Shown piece after piece: positions 5,884-47,899 of a stretch of 55,057 bases of DNA. Under the pieces are notes generated by a model. It saw nothing but the letters and a program-made list of their open reading frames with translations. It was not told the origin of the DNA and ran no database searches. Source of the stretch: Piromyces finnis finn (Eukaryota > Fungi > Neocallimastigomycota); the NCBI GenBank assembly GCA_002104945.1, contig MCFH01000104.1:1-55057 (forward strand). Direction: 5' to 3'. Made by a program: the position numbers and the translations under genes. Position 1 is the stretch's first letter. Each line of letters begins with the position of its first letter.

Positions 5884-8800
5884 AAGAAAAAATAAAGAAA
5901 AAATAACTTTTCGTAATACCATATAACTAAAATTTAAAAAATTTACTAGATATAATAATAATAAAAATTATAATAAACAATTACAATTATTAAAATAGTT
6001 TATTGAATAGATACATATTTAAAAATATTTTCTAATTTATAATTATACTTTTTTTTTTATTAAATTACATACAAAAATTGAATATTTTTAAATTCTTCTT
6101 GGTTTATACTAAATAAAAACTCTCATTAATAATGAATAGTTTATTATTATTAATGAATTAAGCTATTAATTAAAATATATAAAATACAAAATATGAATTA
6201 AATTATTTTAGGAAATTTTTAATATGATAAAGGAAATATATATAATTATTTTGTTATCAATTTTCTAATAATTTTGATAAATTAAATATTAAATATAGAT
6301 AGTAGTAAATAAAAATAGTATTTAAAATAATATAAATAATAATTAAATGATAATAATAGAGTAATTAATGAGGTTTATTCTTATAAAATGAATATATATA
6401 TACTATACATGTAACATTATTTATAATTCCTCATAAAATATATATTTTTCATTTAATATAAAAAATATTTTTTTAAATAAAAAAGATAGAAATAGTAACT
6501 TAAAAAATAATATGTATGTAAAGGAAGATAGAAAGAAATATTAAAAGTGTAACTAAAGAGAAAAAAAATATATTAAAAATTTGTGTTAATTATTAAAATA
6601 TAGGAGTAAATGATATTCCTAGTATATTTATTTGTATAACCTTTCTGATACATTTTTTTATTTTTATTTTTATTTTTTTTTTTTTACATCTGTAACAATA
6701 ATATATATAAATAGTTTATATATAGATATATTAAATGTACCTAATAAATGAATCTGTCATGTTAATGACATAAAATTTTTTATAATATACAAGGTACAAT
6801 TTTTCTAAAATGGAATTTTAATATAATAAATATTATGATTTCTATAAAAAAATAGTAACATTAACAACAATATTAACATCATATTATTTATTTAAAATGT
6901 ATTATTTAAATTTGGGAAATAATAATGGGAAAGAATAAATAATTTTAATAAATTATTATTTCATGAAATGATATTATTTAAAATTATCATAATTATTCAT
7001 AGTCAGAGTTATGATTAAAATTAAATTGTATATTTCACTACATTGTTTTCCAAATTAAGTTAATAGTAGAAGGAGATTACTTTTTTTTTTTTTTATACAG
7101 ATGATAATAAATTTTTATATTATTATATTGTTAAAGAATCTCATTTATTTATAGCTCATTTAGTATTGTTTGTTAATTGAATCACCACATAAAAAAAGTA
7201 AAATATTATGATTTTTCTTTAATCTTTTAAATTTTAATTTATTTCTCATTAACATAAATTATGTTTAAATCAAAATTAATAAAATAAAAAATAATATTAT
7301 TTTTTCTATTAATTTTAGATATGCTATTAATATAAAATACAATTACTCATTTTTTATTTTTCAATTTTAAAGTTATTTTTATTTTCCCTTTAAAATTTTA
7401 TTTGCTCAAAGACTAATTTTATTTTTGAAAAATAAATGAAAAATTTATGATAAAAATAAAATACTTATAATGAAAAAAAGTTAAGGAACAAAAGAAATAT
7501 TAAAATTTATTTTCCTTTTAAAGTTTTATGGATAATTAAAATAATTTTACCCTTGAAAATACATTAAATATTTAATATTTATATTGTGAAATATAAAAAT
7601 AAGGATAGAAAAAAAAGTGTTATATACAATTTCTTTTTTTTTTTTTTTTTTTTTCTATACCTATTTCTTATGATATTCTTGATCTACACAAAATAAATTA
7701 ACTTTAAAATTTTTTTTTTTTTTTATGTTTTAAAAATTCATATATTTTTCACACAATCATTGACATGACAGATTGTGTACTGTGTACATTTCTAAATTAA
7801 AAATAATATATTTATAATATATGAGTATTTATAAATAGTATTTTGGTCGTCGTACCACGTTAAGTTTTTTTTTTTTTTTAAAAAAAGAAGCAAATTATTA
7901 TATTAAAAAATATAATTTTAAAAAATTAATATTATTATATTAAATAATATATTTTATAATAGTTAAATTAATTATTGTATAATATATTATTTATTAATAT
8001 TTTTTTTCAAACAAATAATATTAACGGAATTTAATAAACAATGTACAATAATACTAAAAATATTGTAATCATAACGGATAATAATAACTTTTAAATTTTT
8101 ATTCAATCCTTTAATTTGAAAAAATGTATTTATTTTTGACTAAGCAATTAAATTTATATAGAATCTAAAATAATATATTGAATATTACAATTATACCATA
8201 TATTGTTATATTACTTTCATTTAGTTACAAAATTAAAATAATTTATTTTACTCAATGAATATAACTTTAAATTTTTTTTAATATATTACATTAATTATCA
8301 TGCTCAAAAATGATAATGATTAAAAAACCTTAAATTATATTAAATTGTCATCATGTTCCATAGTGTTACAATAATTAGAACCTTAATTTTTTTAAAGTTT
8401 AAACTTTGAAGATTTGATTTTTAAACAATTTCCCTAACCTCTTAGAAAAAGTAATATATAAACAAGACATTTTTACTTTACTTTTTTTATTTTAAATTGT
8501 AAACTATATTTAATAAATTATATAGAGTTATAATTTATTAAATATATATATTTTTATAACAATAAAAAACAACATAAAGTAATATAAATAAATTGATTTT
8601 ATTTATCCTAATTTAATCTTAATTTAAAGGTAAGAAAAAGATTGTAAAAAAAGATTTTGTTTTTTAAATAAAAGGAAATTTAATGATATTAAAATAAAAT
8701 AAATTGCTAATACATGTCATGAAATGTTTCACAATTATTGAGAAATTTCACGGGAAACAAATTATTATAAAAATTCATAACTATAATTATTAATCATTAT

Positions 8801-8996
8801 TATAAATTAATAATAATAATAATTTATTATTTTATATGTTACTAATACTATTTTTATGTTGAAAATGTTATAATTCTATATGATATATTCATAATAAAAA
8901 TTGGATAAATTGAAATGGACGAATTGAATAATAGAACAACTATTATATAGAAACAAATTTTTAAAAAAAACAAAAACAATTAAAAAAGAAAACAAA

Positions 8997-11900
8997 ATGA
9001 AATTTTCAAAAATAGCTTTATTAGCTATCTCAATATTAAATGTTGATATATCCTTAGCTGCCCGTTGTGGTAAGGATAATGGATTATCATGTCCATCTGG
9101 TTACTGTTGTTCAAAAGATGGACAATGTGGTAAAAATGAAACTTTTTGTGGTGTTGGTTGTCAACCAAATTATGGTTTATGTAACGCACTTCTTATGACA
9201 AAGAAGCCAAAGGCTATTGCCACTAAAGCTCCAGTAACAATTAAGCCAACTGTTAAACCAATATCTAATGATGGTACTTGTGGTCCAAATAATGGTAATA
9301 AAGTATGTTCAAATGATGAATGTTGTAGTAAATTTGGATACTGTGGTAAAGGTGAAGTTTACTGTGGTTCTGGTTGTCAATCTGAATTTGGAAAATGCAA
9401 AACTGAAACTACTAAGCAAGTTTCAAATGGTGCTTGCCCAAGATGTTACAAGTGTATGAAGTGTGATGCTAAGATGGCTCGTCAATGCCCAGATGCTTGC
9501 AAAGAAACTGAAGAAAAGAAGCCAGAAGAAGAACAAATTGCTTGTCCAAGATGTTACAAGTGCATGAAGTGTGATGCTAAGATGGCTCGTCAATGCCCAG
9601 ATGCTTGCAAGGAAACCGAAGAAAAGAAGCCAGAAGAAGAACAAATTGCTTGTCCAAGATGTTACAAGTGCATGAAGTGTGATGCTAAGATGGCTCGTCA
9701 ATGCCCAGATGCTTGCAAGGAAACCGAAGAAAAGAAGCCAGAAGAAGAACAAATTGCTTGTCCAAGATGTTACAAGTGTATGAAGTGTGATGCTAAGATG
9801 GCTGCTCAATGCCCAGATGCTTGCAAGGAAACTGAAGAAAAGAAGCCAGAAGAAGAACAAATTGCTTGTCCAAGATGTTACAAGTGCATGAAGTGTGATG
9901 CTAAGATGGCTGCTCAATGCCCAGATGCTTGCAAGGAAACTGAAGAAAAGAAGCCAGAAGAAGAACAAATTGCTTGTCCAAGATGTTACAAGTGCATGAA
10001 GTGTGATGCTAAGATGGCTGCTCAATGCCCAGATGCTTGCAAGGAAACTGAAGAAAAGAAGCCAGAAGAAGAACAAATTGCTTGTCCAAGATGTTACAAG
10101 TGCATGAAGTGTGATGCCAAGATGGCTGCTCAATGCCCAGATGCTTGCAAGGAAACCGAAGAAAAGAAGCCAGAAGAAGAACAAATTGCTTGTCCAAGAT
10201 GTTACAAGTGTATGAAGTGTGATGCTAAGATGGCTCGTCAATGCCCAGATGCTTGCAAGGAAACCGAAGAAAAGAAGCCAGAAGAAGAACAAATTGCTTG
10301 TCCAAGATGTTACAAGTGTATGAAGTGTGATGCTAAGATGGCTGCTCAATGCCCAGATGCTTGCAAGGAAACCGAAGAAAAGAAGCCAGAAGAAGAACAA
10401 ATTGCTTGTCCAGCATGCCTTCATTGTATGAAGTGTGAACCAAATTCTGAGATGGCTATTCACTGTCCAGATGCTTGTCAAGAAGCTGAAGAAGAACAAG
10501 AAGAAGAACAAATTGCTTGTCCAAGATGTTACAAGTGTATGAAGTGTGATGCTAAGATGGCTCGTCAATGCCCAGATGCTTGCAAGGAAACCGAAGAAAA
10601 GAAGCCAGAAGAAGAACAAATTGCTTGTCCAAGATGTTACAAGTGTATGAAGTGTGATGCTAAGATGGCTGCTCAATGCCCAGATGCTTGCAAGGAAACC
10701 GAAGAAAAGAAGCCAGAAGAAGAACAAATTGCTTGTCCAGCATGCCTTCATTGTATGAAGTGTGAACCAAATTCTGAGATGGCTATTCACTGTCCAGATG
10801 CTTGTCAAGAAGCTGAAGAAGAACAAGAAGAAGAACAAATTGCTTGTCCAAGATGTTATAAGTGCATGAAGTGTGATGCTAAGATGGCTCGTCAATGCCC
10901 AGACGCTTGCAAAGAAACTGGAAAAAAGAACGAAAAATCTGAAAAGAAAGATGAAAAGAAGGATGAAAAATCTGAAAAGAAAATTGAAAAGAATAATGAA
11001 AAAACTGAAAAAAAGAATGAGAAAAAGAAGGAAAAGAGAGAATTTTTCGGTTGCCCAAGATGCTTCAAGTGTATGAAGTGTGATGCTAAGATGGCTCTTC
11101 AATGCCCAGATGCTTGCCAAGATGAACAAGAACAAATTGCTTGTCCAAGATGTTACAAGTGTATGAAATGCGATGCTAAGATGGCTGCTCAATGTCCAGA
11201 TGCTTGTCAAGAAACTAAAGAACCAGAACAAGAAGCTGTTGCTTGCCCAAGATGTTACAAATGCATGAAGTGTGATGCTAAGATGGCTGCTCAATGCCCA
11301 GATGCTTGTCAAGATGCTGAAGAAAAGATTGAAAAGAGAGGAATTTTCGGTTGTCCAAGATGTTACAAGTGTATGAAGTGTGACGCCAAGATGGCTGCTC
11401 AATGCCCAGATGCTTGCCAAGATGAACAAGAACAAATTGCTTGTCCAAGATGTTACAAGTGTATGAAATGCGATGCTAAGATGGCTGCTCAATGTCCAGA
11501 TGCTTGTCAAGAAACTAAAGAACCAGTACAAGAAGCTGTTGCTTGCCCATTATGTCTTCACTGTATGGAATGTGATGCCAAGATGGCTGCTCAATGTCCA
11601 GATGCTTGTCAAGAAACTAAAGAACCAAAACAAGAAGCTGTTGCTTGTCCAAGATGTTACAAGTGCATGAAGTGTGATGCTAAGATGGCTGCTCAATGCC
11701 CAGATGCTTGCCAAGATGTTGAAGGAAAGATAGAAAAGAGAGGTCTTTTTGATCTTTTTGCTTGCCCAAGATGTTACAAGTGCATGAAGTGTGATGCTAA
11801 AATGGCACGTCAATGTCCAGATGCCTGCCAAGATGCTGAAGAAAAGAAGCCAGAACAAGAGGCTGTTGCTTGTCCAAGATGTTACAAGTGCATGAAATGC

Positions 11901-13925
11901 GATGCTAAGATGGCTGCTCAATGTCCAGATGCTTGTCAAGAAGCTGAAGAAAAACCAGTACAAGAAGCTGTTGCTTGTCCATTATGTCTTCACTGTATGA
12001 AATGTGATGCCAAGATGGCTGCTCAATGCCCAGATGCTTGCCAAGAAGAAGAAGAACCAGAACAAGAAGCTGTTCCTTGTCCAGCATGCCTTCATTGTAT
12101 GAAGTGTGAACCAAACTCTGAAATGGCTATCAACTGTCCAGATGCTTGTCAAGAAGAAGAACCAGTACAAGAAGCTGTTGCTTGTCCAAGATGTTACAAG
12201 TGCATGAAGTGTGATGCTAAGATGGCTGCTCAATGTCCAGATGCTTGTCAAGAAGAAGAACCAGTACAAGAAGCTGTTGCTTGCCCATTATGTCTTCACT
12301 GTATGGAATGTGATGCCAAGATGGCTGCTCAATGTCCAGATGCTTGTCAAGAAACTAAAGAACCAGAACAAGAAGCTGTTGCTTGTCCAAGATGTTACAA
12401 GTGCATGAAGTGTGATGCTAAGATGGCTGCTCAATGCCCAGATGCTTGTCAAGAAGAAGAACCAGTACAAGAAGCTGTTGCTTGTCCATTATGTCTTCAT
12501 TGTATGAAGTGTGATGCCAAGATGGCTGCTCAATGTCCAGATGCTTGCCAAGAAGAAGAACCAGAACAAGAAGCTGTTTCTTGTCCAGCATGCCTTCATT
12601 GTATGAAGTGTGAACCAAACTCCGAAATGGCTATCCACTGTCCAGATGCTTGTCAAGAAGCTGAAGAAGAACCAGTACAAGAAGCTGTTGCTTGTCCATT
12701 ATGTCTTCACTGTATGAAATGTGATGCCAAGATGGCTGCTCAATGCCCAGATGCTTGTCAAGAAGAAGAAGAACCAGAACAAGAAGCTGTTCCTTGTCCA
12801 GCATGCCTTCATTGTATGAAGTGTGAACCAAACTCCGAAATGGCTATCCACTGTCCAGATGCTTGTCAAGAAGAAGAACCAGTACAAGAAGCTGTTGCTT
12901 GCCCATTATGTCTTCACTGTATGGAATGTGATGCCAAGATGGCTGCTCAATGCCCAGATGCTTGTCAAGAAACTAAAGAACCAGAACAAGAAGCTGTTGC
13001 TTGTCCAAGATGTTACAAGTGCATGAAGTGTGATGCTAAGATGGCTGCTCAATGCCCAGATGCTTGCCAAGAAGAAGAAGAACCAGTACAAGAAGCTGTT
13101 GCTTGTCCATTATGTCTTCACTGTATGGAATGTGATGCCAAGATGGCTGCTCAATGCCCAGATGCTTGTCAAGAAACTAAAGAACCAGAACAAGAAGCTG
13201 TTGCTTGTCCATTATGTCTTCACTGTATGAAATGTGATGCCAAGATGGCTGCTCAATGCCCAGATGCTTGCCAAGAAGAAGAAGAACCAGTACAAGAAGC
13301 TGTTGCTTGTCCATTATGTCTTCACTGTATGGAATGTGATGCCAAGATGGCTGCTCAATGCCCAGATGCTTGTCAAGAAACTAAAGAACCAGAACAAGAA
13401 GCTGTTGCTTGTCCAAGATGTTACAAGTGCATGAAGTGTGATGCTAAGATGGCTGCTCAATGCCCAGATGCTTGCCAAGAAGAAGAAGAACCAGTACAAG
13501 AAGCTGTTGCTTGTCCATTATGTCTTCACTGTATGGAATGTGATGCCAAGATGGCTGCTCAATGTCCAGATGCTTGCCAAGAAGAAGAACCAGAACAAGA
13601 AGCTGTTGCTTGTCCAAGATGTTACAAGTGCATGAAGTGTGATGCTAAGATGGCTGCTCAATGCCCAGATGCTTGCCAAGAAGAACAAGAAGAACAAATA
13701 GCTTGTCCAAAGTGCTACCACTGTCTTGATTGTGATGCTAAGATGGCTGCTCAATGCCCAGATGCATGCAAACTTAAGAAAACAACAACTATTAAGATCA
13801 AACCAGCCATTAGAACTACTACTATTACCAAAAAAGTTTTATGTCCACTCTGTATCGAATGTATAGATTGTAGAAATAACTCAAACATGGCTAAGAACTG
13901 TAAAAGTGCTTGCAGAAAATTCTAA
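8997..13925 (+). CDS. Secreted protein: signal peptide, 2x CBM18 (hevein-like chitin-binding) domains and 42 tandem six-Cys modules
   Basis: Intronless 1642-aa ORF. Hydrophobic N-terminus MKFSKIALLAISILNVDISLA. Two 8-Cys hevein-pattern domains (CG...C...CCSxxGxCG...CGxGCQxxxGxC). Repeats such as CPRCYKCMKCDAKMAAQCPDAC follow. No C-terminal TM or GPI-like tail (ends ...CKSACRKF). Codon usage resembles the highly expressed SAM synthetase gene. Confidence 0.9.
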   Translation: MKFSKIALLAISILNVDISLAARCGKDNGLSCPSGYCCSKDGQCGKNETFCGVGCQPNYGLCNALLMTKKPKAIATKAPVTIKPTVKPISNDGTCGPNNGNKVCSNDECCSKFGYCGKGEVYCGSGCQSEFGKCKTETTKQVSNGACPRCYKCMKCDAKMARQCPDACKETEEKKPEEEQIACPRCYKCMKCDAKMARQCPDACKETEEKKPEEEQIACPRCYKCMKCDAKMARQCPDACKETEEKKPEEEQIACPRCYKCMKCDAKMAAQCPDACKETEEKKPEEEQIACPRCYKCMKCDAKMAAQCPDACKETEEKKPEEEQIACPRCYKCMKCDAKMAAQCPDACKETEEKKPEEEQIACPRCYKCMKCDAKMAAQCPDACKETEEKKPEEEQIACPRCYKCMKCDAKMARQCPDACKETEEKKPEEEQIACPRCYKCMKCDAKMAAQCPDACKETEEKKPEEEQIACPACLHCMKCEPNSEMAIHCPDACQEAEEEQEEEQIACPRCYKCMKCDAKMARQCPDACKETEEKKPEEEQIACPRCYKCMKCDAKMAAQCPDACKETEEKKPEEEQIACPACLHCMKCEPNSEMAIHCPDACQEAEEEQEEEQIACPRCYKCMKCDAKMARQCPDACKETGKKNEKSEKKDEKKDEKSEKKIEKNNEKTEKKNEKKKEKREFFGCPRCFKCMKCDAKMALQCPDACQDEQEQIACPRCYKCMKCDAKMAAQCPDACQETKEPEQEAVACPRCYKCMKCDAKMAAQCPDACQDAEEKIEKRGIFGCPRCYKCMKCDAKMAAQCPDACQDEQEQIACPRCYKCMKCDAKMAAQCPDACQETKEPVQEAVACPLCLHCMECDAKMAAQCPDACQETKEPKQEAVACPRCYKCMKCDAKMAAQCPDACQDVEGKIEKRGLFDLFACPRCYKCMKCDAKMARQCPDACQDAEEKKPEQEAVACPRCYKCMKCDAKMAAQCPDACQEAEEKPVQEAVACPLCLHCMKCDAKMAAQCPDACQEEEEPEQEAVPCPACLHCMKCEPNSEMAINCPDACQEEEPVQEAVACPRCYKCMKCDAKMAAQCPDACQEEEPVQEAVACPLCLHCMECDAKMAAQCPDACQETKEPEQEAVACPRCYKCMKCDAKMAAQCPDACQEEEPVQEAVACPLCLHCMKCDAKMAAQCPDACQEEEPEQEAVSCPACLHCMKCEPNSEMAIHCPDACQEAEEEPVQEAVACPLCLHCMKCDAKMAAQCPDACQEEEEPEQEAVPCPACLHCMKCEPNSEMAIHCPDACQEEEPVQEAVACPLCLHCMECDAKMAAQCPDACQETKEPEQEAVACPRCYKCMKCDAKMAAQCPDACQEEEEPVQEAVACPLCLHCMECDAKMAAQCPDACQETKEPEQEAVACPLCLHCMKCDAKMAAQCPDACQEEEEPVQEAVACPLCLHCMECDAKMAAQCPDACQETKEPEQEAVACPRCYKCMKCDAKMAAQCPDACQEEEEPVQEAVACPLCLHCMECDAKMAAQCPDACQEEEPEQEAVACPRCYKCMKCDAKMAAQCPDACQEEQEEQIACPKCYHCLDCDAKMAAQCPDACKLKKTTTIKIKPAIRTTTITKKVLCPLCIECIDCRNNSNMAKNCKSACRKF
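9435..13913 (+). repeat. Coding tandem array of 42 Cys-rich modules; 108-bp period in the 5' block, variable spacers in the 3' block
   Basis: Modules 1-10 start every 108 bp from 9435. Head variants are CPRCYKCMKC, CPLCLHCM(E/K)C and CPACLHCMKC; tail variants are DAKMA(A/R/L)QCPDAC and EPNSEMAI(H/N)CPDAC. Confidence 0.95.
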
Positions 13926-14330
13926 GAAATTTAAAAGTTATAAATTTAGAATTTAATATCTTAAATATTAAATTTTATTAAATATAGAATAAGTGATAAT
14001 ATAACTTTATTTTTAATTATTGATTTTATATAAAAAAAGTTTTACAATAATTAAAACATTAAAAAATAAAAAAAAAAAAAGAAATAAAAACTAAAAAAAA
14101 AAAAATTAAAAAGAAATATAAATAATATTTAAAAGTAATTATAAATATAAATAATAAGAAATATAAATAATATTTAAAAGTAATTATAAATATAAATAAT
14201 AAACATAAATAATAAATATAAAATAAATATTAAATTATTTGTAATATATGAATTTTTTTTTTTTTTTTTTTTTTAATTTTTTATATTAAAAGAAATATTA
14301 GTATTAATTAACGTGTATCTCTGTAAATCA

Positions 14331-15368
14331 ATTATGTTATGAATACCCAGAGTTTGCCTATGGCTTCTACTGGGTATTGAAAGCAAGAAGCGGATATAAG
14401 TTGGATGCTAGAGTTGCCAAAGCTGCTAAATTTGTTGATCCAGTTTGTCCTAACTACTGTCCATGCTGCAAGTGTGGTGTTCAAAGTATTAAACATTGGT
14501 TATTAGATTGTCCAACATTTAGAGATATCCGTATTAAACATTATGATTCTATAGTCCATCTATTAAATTTTTTCAGTCAACGTATTTCCAATAGTCCTAT
14601 CAATAATAATGAAATTGATAATGTCAGCAGAGATAGCAATAACAGTAATAGTAATAGTAACAATAGTAATAATAACAATAGTAATAATAACAATAGTAGT
14701 AATAGAAATAATAATATTAGTAATGATAGCAATAGTGATGATAATAATTCTAATTTAGATAGTAATTTAGTTAATGATAGTAATAGTTCTAATAATCCGG
14801 TGAATATTAATGTGTATGATTATTCTAGTGTGTGCAGTAAAATATTTAAATTCCTTCTTGGGGGAAGAAGTTTTAACAATATTAATTACAATTCAAGGGA
14901 ATGGAAAGAACTTTGTAAGCGTCAGATTCAATCTGGTACTAACGAAGAAACACCATTCTTGACGGTAACCGCGGAACTTCTAACCAAAATCATGCCTTTT
15001 GCTATTGGCCAGCAATGGTCAATGTTCAAAAGGTTTGAAGCAACATCCAAGAGCGTCAATGTTGAAGAAACAGTAAGACAGGCCAGGAGGGCCAGCGCAA
15101 CCAATGGAGATCATAATTTTGTTCCATGACAAAATTTTGATCTTTGGCTCGGTGTCCCATTGGAAGTCAAATACAAATATTATACTTTAGTATGATAGTG
15201 GCTTTCTTACTTTAATTAAAATTACTAGAATACATTATACCCAATTTTTATTCATTTGTGTTTATTTAAACATATTTTTTTTTATTTTTATTTTTATTTT
15301 TAATTTTTTTTATTACATGTATTATAATTTTAATTAAATTAATAATAAAGTTTAAAATATTTGATGCC

Positions 15369-43374: not shown

Positions 43375-46300
43375 TCATGGAACAAAATTATGATCTCCAT
43401 TGGTTGCGCTGGCCCTCCTGGCCTGTCTTACTGTTTCTTCAGCATTGACGCTCTTGGATGTTGCTTCAAACCTTTTGAACATTGACCATTGCTGGCCAAT
43501 AGCAAAAGGCATGATTTTGGTTAGAAGTTCCGCGGTTACCGTCAAGAATGGTGCTCCTTCATTAGTACCAGATTGAATCTGACGCTTACAAAGTTCTTTC
43601 CATTCCCTTGAATTGTAATTAATATTGTTAAAACTTCTTCCCCCAAGAAGGAATTTAAATATTTTACTGCACACACTAGAATAATCATACACATTAATAT
43701 TCACCGGATTATTAGAACTATTACTATCATTAACTAAATTACTATCTAAATTAGAATTATTATCTTCACTATTGCTATCATTACTAATATTATTATTTCT
43801 ATTATTGTTATTATTACTATTGTTACTATTACTATTGTTACTATTACTATTGTTATTACTACTATTGTTACTATTACTATTAATGTTATTACTATCTCTA
43901 CTGATATTATCAATTTCATTATTATTGATAGGACTATTGGAATTACGTTGACTGAAAAAATTTAATAGCTGGACTATGGAATCATAATGTTTAATACGGA
44001 TATCTCTAAATGTTGGACAATCTAATAACCAATGTTTAATACTTTGATCTCCACACTTGCAACATGGACAGTAGTTAGGACAAACTGGATCAACAAATTT
44101 GGCAGCTTTGGCAACTCTAGCATCCAACTTGTATCCGCTTCTTGCTTTCAATAGCCAGTAGAAGCCATAGGCAAACTCTGGGTACTCATAACATAATTTA
44201 ATAAAATCTTTAGTTTCAATAAATTTATTATCATCATAATATTGCGCTTTGATTGAATTCCCTTTGAGATCTTTCCAATAAAAGTTTTTAACTGCTTTAA
44301 CATCTCCATGTTTCTTTAATTTTTTATCAAGTGTCCTACTTGATTTGCACCACGTGTATTTTCTAAATTTAGGAATGTAATTGACAAGGTGTGAGATAAT
44401 ACAATTTGAGTTTTTCCATTTGTTAAAACATCTAACCTGAGCTAACGCACATTTGGCTGACAGTGGAGGAATATTCAAATCTTTTGAAATAGAGTATAAA
44501 GATATAAACGATACAGCTTTATGAACTCCGGCAACCCATCGTATTCCTTTGTTAACATGCTTCTGAGCAATTCTAGACCTAGCTTTGTTGGATCCAAGTA
44601 ATGGTGCAAAGTATGAAACTCTGCTAATCACTTGTGAGTTAAGTACTAGTTTTTTGAAAGGAATAGGAATATTAGGATTTCTTAAGAATTTACTGACTGA
44701 GAAAAGCCCTTTCAAAACCTTGTTATTAAGAGCTTTAATTACTGGTTTAAGGGACAGATTCTTATCAAATGGAACACCAAGATAAGTATAGCAATCAGTA
44801 GTTGGAATGGGTTGTCCTGCTAAGTAAAATGTTGGATCTCTCTTGTTCTGATTTTCTATTGATTCAGGACGAATCACCATCGTTGAACATTTCTGGATAC
44901 CAAATTCCATTTCATTATACAAGGCCCATTCATTAACTCTTCTAAGCATCTTTTTTAAGCATCCTCTTGTTGGAGCACAAATAACTATATCATCTGCAAA
45001 AAGTCCACCACAGCATCGAGTGTCACCTAAACTGACTCCTAGATCTTCGCACTCTCTAAATATATCATTAATAAAGAGATTAAAGAGAATAGGAGAAAGA
45101 GGGCAACCTTGACGGACTCCTTTCTTCACATCAAAAGATTTCGAGAATTGTCCATCTAATTTGACATTAGCCTTAGATGTTAAATATAAATTTTTGATAA
45201 ATTGTAGACTCTTACCTCGGATTCCTAAACAATCTAATTTATGGAGAATATTACCGATTGGGACTGAATCGTATGCTTTCCTGAGATCTAAAAAGGCCAA
45301 ATATGTCTCTTTATTATCTAATTGACGTCTACGGCATATTTCTTGGATTGAAATGAAAAGACTAATACTTTCTTCCTTTTTTCGAAAACCAAATTGTTCA
45401 GGTCTAATGAAATTATTCTTTAAACCATATTCTGAGATTCTAGTGGTGACAATTTTGGAAATCAACTTAATACCATTATTGATAAGTGATATACCTCGAT
45501 AGTTATCACAATCTGTCAAATCTCCCTTCTTAGGAATAGAAACAATACTGGATTCATTCCATGAGTTGGGGAAATCTCCATCCCAAATACGGTTGAATAA
45601 TTTAAGAATAAAATTTAAACCATGAGCATCATTATCTGAAGTAGCATTACCAGAAGAATTATTATCTGTAGCATTATTAGAATCATTACTTGATGGAACT
45701 AATGCTTTGTAAAATTCAATTGGAATACCATCCGGACCTGATGCTTTATAATTTGGAGTAGTGAGGATAGCTGACTTGACTTCATCAATACTAATATCTT
45801 GGTTGATATCCCACTCATCAAGCATAGGAAGTGAAAAACGTTTATTCGTTGGTTCTTCATACCAATGCTCCAAATCAAGACTTATACCACTTGGGTCTGA
45901 TGCAAGATTTTCGAAATGATCATGCCACACATCTAGTTGTTCTTCTGTAGCAACAACTAATTCTCCATTTTTATTTTTAATTGGTTGAGCAATAAAGAAA
46001 GAATCTTTTCCAATTTTTGCAGTTTTCTTGATCCATTTCCAGGCCTTCTTAGGATTATGACTCTTCATATACTCACATCCTGTTTTAATCCAATGAAGAT
46101 ATTCTTGCTTCCTAAATTCATTACATCTTTTGTGGATGTAATCAATGAGTTTACGGTAGATTTTAATTCTTTTAATAAATTCATCTATATCATAAATTCT
46201 TTCTTTTTTAAATCTCTTATACAACTTCATTTTGATTTTTTGAAGATTAAAAATTTGTTGTGAAATATGAAATGAAGACTTTATAACATTATTTGCTGAA

Positions 46301-47899
46301 GTAATACTGAGCTCGTCTGCAATTGAAAAAGCAGTTGAAGTAAACTCTTTGGAAAGTTCATCTGTAGAAACATTAGGATCGTTGAATTTTGCTGAAAGTA
46401 TTTGGAATTTATTATGACTGAGAATAGATTCCTTTTCCTCAATACATTTTAATCTATTCCATTTCAGAATTTTCTTAGGAACATTAAAGTCATTAGAAAA
46501 ATCTTCCATAGGAATAATTTTACCATTAATAAGAAGTGGCTTATGGTCTGACACAGGATAAAAATTATTTATAAATGATCCTGAGTGAATAAGATCTTTC
46601 ATCTTCGAATTGATAAGAGCATGGTCAATGTCGGAAGATTGATCACCTCGAGTCCAAGAGATAGTAGACCCTCTAAGCGGAAGAATTTCCCAATCTCCTA
46701 ATCCATTAGTTGATAACCAGTTGGATAATTTTACTTTAGACATATTAAAATCACCAACAAGAATCGATGGATGGGATGAATGAGTTTGTAACCACAAGCG
46801 AACTTCTAACTTTGCATGATCAACATAGATGTTGTGATGACTATGAGGCATATAAACATTTCCAATCGAGCATTTGAATCTATTCCAGAGACTAAAAGTA
46901 TAAATAGAAATAATATACTTTCCAGAGAAGTTTTCAAGTGAGGCTTGACACGAATTGTGAAAACCTAAATATAAACCTCTCATTCCTGGAACTGATTCGT
47001 CAGCTTTCTTGAAAAAAGTGTCTATAGTTTCGCAAAGTAACACGACAAGGATAATCTGTATTCGAACCAGAACCATTACCAGTTTCTTGGAAACATAAAA
47101 ATAATGGTTTGAAAATAGCTGTGAAATAGCTAATACTATCTCTCTTTTCGTGATTCCACCCATTGGTGTTCCAACTAAGACAAAAAGAAAAGTTATCAGG
47201 CTTGTTGGATGAGGAAGAATCGTTGCTATTATTATTATTATTAAAGTCATCGTTATTAATGGATGATGCATCAGAGGAATAAGTAGAACTATTACTAGAT
47301 GGCTGTGAAACTGAAGAACTATCAACTATTGAACTGTTATCAGAGTTGATAGAGCTATTAGAATTAATTGTTGAATGTTGAGATTGAAATTGTGTTTGCT
47401 GTAGATCTGGAATATTTTCATGATTGGAAACTTGTTGAAGATCTTGTTGAAGATCTAGTTGAAGATCGGATTGTTGATGAGATTGTTGAACTGATTGTTG
47501 AAATGATTGTTGAATAGAATGTTGATGTTTATTAGAAACTAAAATTTTACGTTTGAGAGTGGAAAAAGTGTATTTGTGATTCCTTCTACTACGAGCTGAA
47601 AAGGAAATTGAGGTAACTGAAAGTTTCTTCTTTAACATGTGTAAGATTTTAATACAATCTTTCGATGAACCATGAACCTTGACTAAGAAAAAGTGATCAT
47701 TGAAAGTCTGAAAATATTTAACACTAATAACTGAATTAAATTTATCTTCTAGAATAACCTCGAGTTTTTCCCATAGCATATTTACTGACCATGATCGAAT
47801 ACCACGGATAAAGAAGGAGCGAATATCATTTAAGGGGATACCATAAGACCGGGTACCACGTCTGATATAATTCTTGTCTTTAATATAAAGGACTGACAT
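43375..47899 (-). CDS. LINE polyprotein (N-terminal domain, APE endonuclease, reverse transcriptase, CCHC knuckle); ~1507 aa if a 1-bp frameshift at 47012-47017 is removed
   Basis: APE: SWNTNG, LCFQET, LVGDFN, IDH, SDHKP. RT: KASGPDGIP, NYRGISL, QFGFR, FLDLRKAYDSV, GVRQGCPLSP, FADD, YLGV. Knuckle: CPCCKCGDQSIKHWLLDC. The ORF track splits it into 47899-47000 and 47325-43375. Confidence 0.9.

Follow-up and report, generated by a model that had tools for sequence, protein, structure and literature searches.

A six-cysteine domain of anaerobic gut fungi, repeated 42 times in a CBM18-bearing secreted protein of Piromyces finnis

Introduction

Anaerobic gut fungi are among the best degraders of plant fibre; their cell surface, and the way in which their extracellular machinery is held, are poorly understood. 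Several described kinds of extracellular protein come close to the one reported here. The Jacob lectins of Entamoeba consist of tandem six-cysteine chitin-binding domains joined by low-complexity spacers, and cross-link the chitin of the cyst wall. The variant surface proteins (VSPs) of Giardia are rich in CXXC, anchored in the membrane and not built of regular units of 22-24 residues. Kex2-processed repeat proteins of fungi and precursors of multiple antimicrobial peptides are known classes as well. Here we describe a gene on the forward strand (8997-13925) of a 55,057-nucleotide stretch of Piromyces finnis finn (Neocallimastigomycota; assembly GCA_002104945.1, contig MCFH01000104.1, positions 1 to 55,057, hereafter the window), whose product carries two chitin-binding CBM18 domains followed by 42 copies of a six-cysteine module. 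Wall proteins made of cysteine-rich tandem repeats and anchored to chitin are already known, in the form of the Jacob lectins and the CBM18 lectin-like proteins; it is the domain family itself that is new.

Like the Jacob lectins, the window protein comes from an anaerobic gut eukaryote, is secreted, consists of tandem six-cysteine mini-domains on low-complexity spacers and is associated with chitin. We found no sequence relationship between the two (no Pfam match), and chitin binding in the window protein would be supplied by CBM18; the repeated module is itself unlikely to bind sugar, because the window modules contain almost no aromatic residues. With the CBM18 lectin-like proteins of fungi and chytrids, for which wheat germ agglutinin (WGA) is the reference, the protein shares a signal peptide, two true CBM18 domains and the lack of a catalytic domain, but its other ~1500 residues are taken up by a domain that is absent from all fetched CBM18 proteins from outside Neocallimastigomycota and unrelated to CBM18 by profile-profile comparison. 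The Opy2 cysteine-rich domain (PF09463) is also a small extracellular domain of fungi, stands N-terminal to the modules in one relative (P0001) and shares a C-P-x-x-C stretch with them, but it has eight cysteines in another spacing and no module matches its Pfam model. The resemblance to Giardia VSPs and other CXXC-rich coats, as CXXC-dense surface proteins of an anaerobic, protease-rich gut, is one of analogy, with no homology detected. Kex2-processed precursors resemble the window protein in their tandem repeats, and it contains KR at three sites as well as acidic spacers next to modules that are partly basic; however, KR does not flank each repeat (three sites for 42 modules), and relatives have the module as a stable domain within larger proteins.

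The ScaA scaffoldins of the same group of organisms exceed 500 kDa, and many have membrane anchors (Haitjema et al. 2017, via PMC8262932, PMC7015840). The window protein is likewise large, secreted, repeat-rich and non-catalytic, and a dockerin-bearing GH45 is encoded in the same window. Nevertheless, the published P. finnis ScaA fragment consists, by inspection, of units of ~35-40 residues with G-Y-Y and two cysteines, whereas the window protein repeats C-x2-C-x2-C-x2-C, carries CBM18 and has no transmembrane segment. Because its repeat differs from the published ScaA unit, the protein does not appear to be a ScaA-type scaffoldin; a scaffoldin-like protein was one of the identities suggested for it in a first-pass annotation made from the sequence alone.

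A secreted chain of 42 six-cysteine modules

The open reading frame is intact and unspliced, starts with ATG and encodes 1642 residues; an identical product is the public gene call on GCA_002104945.1:MCFH01000104.1. Its features are as follows.

8997..9059, +: signal peptide, residues 1-21, read from the translation (MKFSK, hydrophobic core, SLA/A); near-identical N-termini in full-length relatives
9063..9182, +: CBM18/hevein domain 1, residues 23-62; Pfam Chitin_bind_1, aligns with the CBM18 copies of relatives
9276..9398, +: CBM18/hevein domain 2, residues 94-134, the best Pfam stretch; 12-residue linker to module 1
9435..10910, +: Block A, modules 1-14, residues 147-638; units of 108-111 nt, acidic linkers of 13-14 residues, net charge -21
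10911..11051, +: Lys/Glu-rich spacer of 47 residues, residues 639-685; contains, at its end, the first Kex2-like KR (residues 680-681, nt 11034-11039), followed by EFFG
11052..13769, +: Block B, modules 15-41, residues 686-1591; units of 90-117 nt, net charge -86, with R-type (22 residues), L-type (22 residues) and A-type (24 residues) modules interleaved
11334..11339, +: second Kex2-like dibasic site, K780-R781, followed by GIFG
11736..11741, +: third Kex2-like dibasic site, K914-R915, followed by GLFDLF
13770..13925, +: C-terminal cassette, with a basic Thr/Lys/Ile-rich linker, module 42 (24-residue type) and 3 residues to the stop; net charge +11

The signal peptide was assigned by eye on the translated sequence, with no predictor. 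Pfam Chitin_bind_1 (PF00187, CBM18) matches the N-terminal 148 residues in two stretches (E = 2.3e-18, 66.6 bits against a cutoff of 27.8), and a regular expression for the 8-cysteine hevein pattern finds it twice in the same region. From here the architecture runs hevein, 41 residues, hevein, 12 residues, module (H-41-H-12-M). A script counts 42 non-overlapping matches to C-x2-C-x2-C-x2-C-x7/9-C-x3-C, 36 of them 22 and six of them 24 residues long, and 268 cysteines in the protein, with 252 in the modules and 16 in the N-terminal region. The first-pass description of a signal peptide, two CBM18 domains, 42 modules of 22-24 residues, acidic spacers and about 268 cysteines in 1642 residues is upheld. 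This repetition of the six-cysteine pattern is far beyond chance.

The fifth cysteine is followed by proline in 41 of the 42 modules, module 42 having C-K instead. Linkers between modules are acidic and 8-17 residues long, except for the 47-residue spacer and a 24-residue Thr/Lys/Ile-rich linker ahead of module 42. At the DNA level, Tandem Repeats Finder detects arrays of 108-nt and 102-nt repeats over 9431-13771, and the array is made of two blocks, modules 1-14 in 108-nt units and modules 15-41 in ~102-nt units. The mature protein, of ~180 kDa, has an isoelectric point of 4.9, a net charge of -83 and no tryptophan, its acidic array being flanked by the basic N-terminus with the CBM18 domains and by the basic C-terminal cassette. 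It has neither a catalytic domain nor a transmembrane segment. Three E-K-R sites are present, with KR at residues 680, 780 and 914, and a hydrophobic G/E-x-F motif comes after each of them.

Two further features of the array were noted in passing. The spacer at residues 639-685 has an EKK/DEKK periodicity and resembles a charged single-helix or hinge segment dividing two separately homogenised blocks. On the opposite strand, the array contains open reading frames at 9423-11531 (-) (702 residues) and 11550-11963 (-) (137 residues), which are most simply explained as by-products of a codon-periodic repeat and not as genes.

The module in other anaerobic gut fungi

To describe the distribution of the module, a profile of the window's modules (A1) was searched exhaustively with HMMER against 1.84 billion representative proteins (E<=1e-3). 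Only nine clusters were returned, with E values down to 3e-22; their named sources are Pecoramyces ruminantium, Neocallimastix lanati, N. californiae, N. 'constans' and Piromyces sp. E2, the rest coming from JGI/IMG or Logan. A search from one of the relatives (P0009) added ~12 module proteins, from Anaeromyces robustus, Neocallimastix, Piromyces E2 and metagenomes (JGI/Logan). We then used a family hidden Markov model (A2), built mainly from the modules of other species; it finds the module in 31 of 79 fetched proteins and matches all 42 modules of the window, and finds none in the fetched CBM18 proteins of Dikarya (Fusarium, Colletotrichum and others) or of the chytrid Globomyces. All named module proteins belong to Neocallimastigomycota. 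On these sequence searches, the module is a previously unannotated six-cysteine domain family restricted to that phylum. The first-pass annotation had proposed following the module through other fungi and had called it unfamiliar; it indeed has no name in the databases, but it is not peculiar to this gene, being instead a family of anaerobic gut fungi in which a single module usually stands 9 residues after a CBM18.

We defined the family by the pattern C-x2-C-x2-C-x2-C-x7/9-C-[P]-x2-C, a hydrophobic residue plus D/N before Cys4, a short helix before Cys5 and a profile match. The window modules fall within this definition, all 42 matching the family model, and the window protein also shows the context of secretion and an anchoring partner, in its signal peptide and two CBM18 domains. 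The canonical module has 24 residues (consensus CPxCxxC[IV]DCDxxPxxAxxCPSTC). The main 22-residue form of the window is a subtype with a two-residue deletion that P0006 and P0009 have too, and the 24-residue subtype of the window (...EMAIHCP...) closely resembles Neocallimastix modules. Because both subtypes occur in other genera, both predate the window array.

In the commonest layout of the family, CBM18 is followed by a linker of 7-13 residues (mostly 9) and one module; there are 28 distinct copies of this arrangement, often alternating repeatedly within one protein, and the junction is conserved as C-L-P-x-N-Y. Other layouts are a signal peptide, CBM18 and 2-5 modules (P0003, P0006); a signal peptide, five modules and three CBM10 dockerins (P0002); and a signal peptide, an Opy2-type cysteine-rich domain and modules on long acidic spacers (P0001 and L113), with 12 modules after the Opy2 domain in P0001 (PF09463, 28 bits against a cutoff of 22.1). 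Every full-length member has a signal peptide, and the modules of the family are for the most part acidic, not cationic. In ten proteins a terminal module lies 2-12 residues from the C-terminus; in P0004 and P0007 it is preceded by a Thr/Lys-rich linker, as in the window, and P0004 also has a KR-G-D-F site. The closest relative of the window's N-terminal CBM18 cassette is P0025, with 55% identity and one module. A word-indexed search for full-length homologues of 900-2900 residues returned no other protein with modules, the relatives being shorter than this range. As judged from these comparisons, the module is a portable extracellular domain joined to anchoring or targeting devices of three kinds (CBM18, CBM10 and Opy2-like), and its amplification is most extreme in the window protein.

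Some members and matches call for comment. In P0028 (Piromyces sp. E2), residues ~128-159 form a variant module whose C-x2-C ladder is two steps longer, with eight cysteines instead of six; pairing of the cysteines is weakly favoured by this variant, since it keeps their number even (eight, not seven). P0008 (Neocallimastix californiae ORY30050.1) bears the UniRef name 'Membrane anchor Opy2 N-terminal domain-containing protein', but the current Pfam Opy2 model matches neither P0008 nor any module, and the name seems to have been inherited from an older or less strict match. When a degenerate DNA pattern of the cysteine spacing was run on JGI metagenome contigs, the family model showed 119 of 120 loci, among the matches listed, to be chance, while L113, a relative of P0001, is real. 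Bare cysteine spacing is therefore not specific at the size of that database.

Comparison of the module with known domains and folds

Pfam, searched at E<=10, gave no significant match for the repeat region, for pieces of it or for 46 single modules, and the module profile found nothing among PDB sequences (best E = 1). The sole Pfam signals for modules came from 4Fe-4S models, at 8-9 bits (E 1.4-4) against cutoffs of 24-27, and are noise. Three named domains were tried as identities for the module and rejected. The 4Fe-4S ferredoxin motif has the spacing C-x2-C-x2-C-x3-C-P, as against C-x2-C-x2-C-x2-C with C-P 7-9 residues further on in the module, and Fer4 scored E>1. A degenerate half-hevein was set aside on the hhalign comparison of module profile A2 with CBM18 profile A4, which gave 0.7% probability over 3 columns. 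The Opy2 domain (PF09463) was not matched by the window protein or by module arrays at E<=10; hhalign of the module with an Opy2-like domain aligned 12 columns at 26% probability, the common stretch being C-P-x-x-C.

AlphaFold2, run on the alignment of 46 modules, gave a single-module model with a mean predicted local distance difference test (pLDDT) score of 85.5, in the form of an irregular cysteine ladder with one short helix and a C-terminal C-P-x-x-C. This confident model suggests that the module can fold independently. For a CBM18-module pair, pLDDT was 80.6 and the predicted template modelling score 0.63, the junction being the weakest block. The single-module model matched no PDB fold with Foldseek or VIA-align, a model of 30 residues being too short to prove a new fold. 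With the CBM18-module model, Foldseek matched among solved structures only the hevein half (WGA and hevein; 1.7-2.1 A over ~41 residues), and the matches extending over both halves were the family's own AFDB entries, in which the relative orientation was inconsistent (template modelling scores of 0.54-0.74). Look-alikes in the ESM Atlas all scored <=0.70 and were generic cysteine-rich wall proteins; they were not used as evidence. The first-pass view that the module is no named domain, is not hevein and lacks ferredoxin spacing agrees with all three kinds of search (Pfam, PDB sequences and PDB folds) and with the hhalign result. In the searchable literature we found no description of the module or its motif, and nothing relevant on cysteine-rich secretome proteins of P. 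finnis.

Sequence constraint and presence in RNA runs

The six cysteine positions are invariant in the 42 copies, with TGT and TGC mixed at each of them (e.g. 27/15 at Cys3), and none of the 252 module cysteine codons carries a non-synonymous change. Across the 36 modules of 22 residues, non-synonymous differences (pN = 0.069) are far fewer than synonymous ones (pS = 0.333; pN/pS = 0.21). Since all cysteine codons are kept while TGT and TGC vary, and pN is well below pS, purifying selection acts on the cysteines and on the entire module. Within units 1-9 of Block A, DNA identity between neighbours is 96-100%, and the copy number given here is thus only as exact as the assembly. In its codon usage (AAG 76%, TAC 93%) the array is like the S-adenosylmethionine (SAM) synthetase gene and unlike the neighbouring ABC transporter and GH45 genes (AAG 19-30%), a statistic inflated by the repeats.

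The first-pass annotation had made its reading depend on transcript or protein evidence, and the gene is present in contigs of runs that are guessed or declared to be RNA. Contigs of several runs guessed to be RNA contain 26-56% of the sampled words of 8700-14300. For the unique 5' coding part (8960-9440), 100% of the words are present in contigs of three runs guessed to be RNA, and 74% in a declared metatranscriptomic RNA-Seq run.

Discussion

The gene encodes a secreted, CBM18-bearing, non-catalytic and strongly acidic chain of 42 conserved six-cysteine domains, and is present in contigs of RNA runs. Our tentative reading, to which we give a probability of about 0.45, is that of a polyanionic chain, tethered to chitin and made of beads that fold independently and are probably disulfide-bonded; it would coat or cross-link the wall. 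The two CBM18 hevein domains in the basic N-terminus would fix the protein to the chitin of the fungus's own wall, and the remaining ~1500 residues would form a polyanionic chain of 42 small domains on short flexible acidic linkers. The module, normally a fixed C-terminal partner of CBM18, would here have been amplified alone by tandem duplication, in two separately homogenised blocks. Three disulfides per module, made in the secretory pathway, would turn the modules into protease-resistant beads, and on the chitin wall the chain may serve as a charged coat or a cross-linking matrix; cleavage at the three KR sites may divide it into four multi-module pieces. Three-disulfide beads are suggested by the secretory route, the even number of cysteines and the small conserved hydrophobic positions. 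Disulfides are usual in the secretory pathway, and the fungal dockerins of the same habitat are disulfide-bonded. The comparison with Jacob lectins, already drawn in the first-pass annotation, is the best fit among its proposals, and it is a fit by analogy.

Several points weigh against this reading. The choice of disulfides over metal ligation of the six cysteines is taken from the secretory route and the even cysteine count, and a coating or cross-linking function from analogy. If cleavage at KR occurs, 28 of the 42 modules would be separated from the CBM18 anchor, and a wall-bound role would then need retention by disulfides or other means. The CBM18-to-module junction of the window is without the conserved LPxNY linker, so that the usual logic of CBM18-module pairing may not apply there. 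Because P0002 has dockerins in place of CBM18, the module is not by its nature a wall component. As to expression, the codon-bias statistic is inflated by 42 copies that repeat the same codons, and four of the five runs containing the gene are only guessed to be RNA, their contigs indicating presence and not level or strand.

A large, secreted, non-catalytic and highly repetitive protein with a wall anchor would also suit a multivalent docking scaffold, each module binding CBM10 dockerins or other copies of the module and recruiting partners to the chitin wall. The cohesin partner of the fungal dockerins is still called elusive and has not been identified (PMC8262932). The module is portable and often a terminal cap, as in the ten proteins that end shortly after one, and P0002 joins its five modules to three CBM10 dockerins as bacterial adaptor scaffoldins join cohesins to a dockerin. 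However, ScaA, the only scaffoldin shown to bind a dockerin, has a different repeat of ~35-40 residues (G-Y-Y...C...C); apart from the cysteines, positions on the module surface differ greatly between family members and among the three subtypes of the window, which is unusual for a conserved binding face; and the window modules are nearly devoid of aromatic residues. We consider a docking scaffold unlikely. A wider proposal is more doubtful, namely that the module is a lineage-specific unit of extracellular assembly or docking and the 42-module chain a wall hub, forming a cohesin-like or homotypic second docking system beside the dockerin-scaffoldin one. In such a system single modules would cap secreted proteins, among them CBM18 lectins, a dockerin protein and perhaps enzymes, which the chain would gather on the wall.

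The packing of six cysteines into 22-24 residues, with knuckle-like C-P-x-C and C-x-x-C motifs, raises the alternative that the cell surface carries a high-capacity thiol, metal or redox buffer, in which the 252 module cysteines would stay reduced in the strongly reducing gut or would bind Zn, Cu, Fe or Fe-S, so that an oxygen-sensitive fungus could sequester or capture metals or scavenge oxygen and oxidants. The anoxic habitat and the acidic linkers are in keeping with such a buffer, tandem arrays suit capacity over specificity, and 4Fe-4S models alone give Pfam signals for modules, though these are far from significant. On the other hand, the protein takes the secretory route, on which cysteines normally form disulfides; the spacing is unlike that of ferredoxin, Zn2Cys6 or zinc-ribbon domains, the ferredoxin-model matches being noise; and no set of His or Asp ligands is conserved across the family. 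The two methionines of each module point to a small hydrophobic core and not to Cu(I) ligands, because relatives have Ile, Val, Tyr or Phe in their place. A metal or redox role is in our view rather unlikely.

Processing by Kex2 at the three E-K-R sites, yielding multi-module fragments or single cysteine-rich peptides with an antimicrobial or signalling role, the acidic spacers neutralising basic modules, is distinctly unlikely as the explanation of the gene. It draws on the hydrophobic G/E-x-F motif after each KR, on the similar KR-G-D-F of P0004, on the net charge of +2 of R-type modules beside acidic spacers and on the fact that Kex2-processed repeat proteins are a class known in fungi. But three sites for 42 modules would give at most four large pieces and not 22-24-mers, no further cleavage motif is conserved in the linkers, the L-type and the majority of the family's modules are acidic, and in relatives the module is fixed 9 residues after CBM18 or beside dockerins, that is, as a domain of a larger protein. 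The first-pass suggestion of a precursor of many free 22-24-mers loses ground on the same counts, no dibasic site flanking a single module; with so few KR sites and the module fixed within larger relatives, a general release of single peptides is disfavoured.

An artefact of assembly or annotation, or a decaying repeat with no functional product, is very improbable: near-identical 108-nt units are hard to assemble and a 5'-truncated LINE copy lies nearby, but the frame stays open over 4.9 kb despite flanks of 13-25% GC, all 252 module cysteine codons are kept in the presence of synonymous variation, the gene is present in RNA-run contigs and homologous modules occur in other genera.

Whichever role the chitin-tethered chain has, the present data define an unannotated and, on the proteins searched, phylum-restricted extracellular domain that is regularly coupled to chitin-binding modules and occasionally to dockerins. 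One gene, present in RNA-run contigs, has this domain amplified 42-fold, and its product is a candidate for a major component of the wall coat. A new family of the Pfam type would annotate dozens of 'hypothetical' proteins, and the module, at 22-24 residues, is a concrete and easily synthesised target for structural and binding work. If it turns out to dock other proteins or to bind metal, protein engineering would gain a new, compact part as well.

Neighbouring genes

The window is very AT-rich, with 13-25% GC outside genes. Besides the gene described, it carries ABC transporters, the SAM synthetase and the following features.

14377-15129, +: open reading frame of 250 residues, ~450 bp downstream of the gene; a 5'-truncated copy of the C-terminal 258 residues of the long interspersed nuclear element (LINE) frame at 43375-47325, with 89% amino acid identity
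32864-34300, +: GH45 catalytic domain with an N-terminal CBM10 fungal dockerin (Pfam E 3e-62 and 2e-14)
43375-47325, -: full-length open reading frame of LINE type, with RVT_1 and an endonuclease domain

The Pfam matches of the GH45 gene agree with the anaerobic-fungal cellulosome setting in which the first-pass annotation had placed the window. The LINE element looks recently active.

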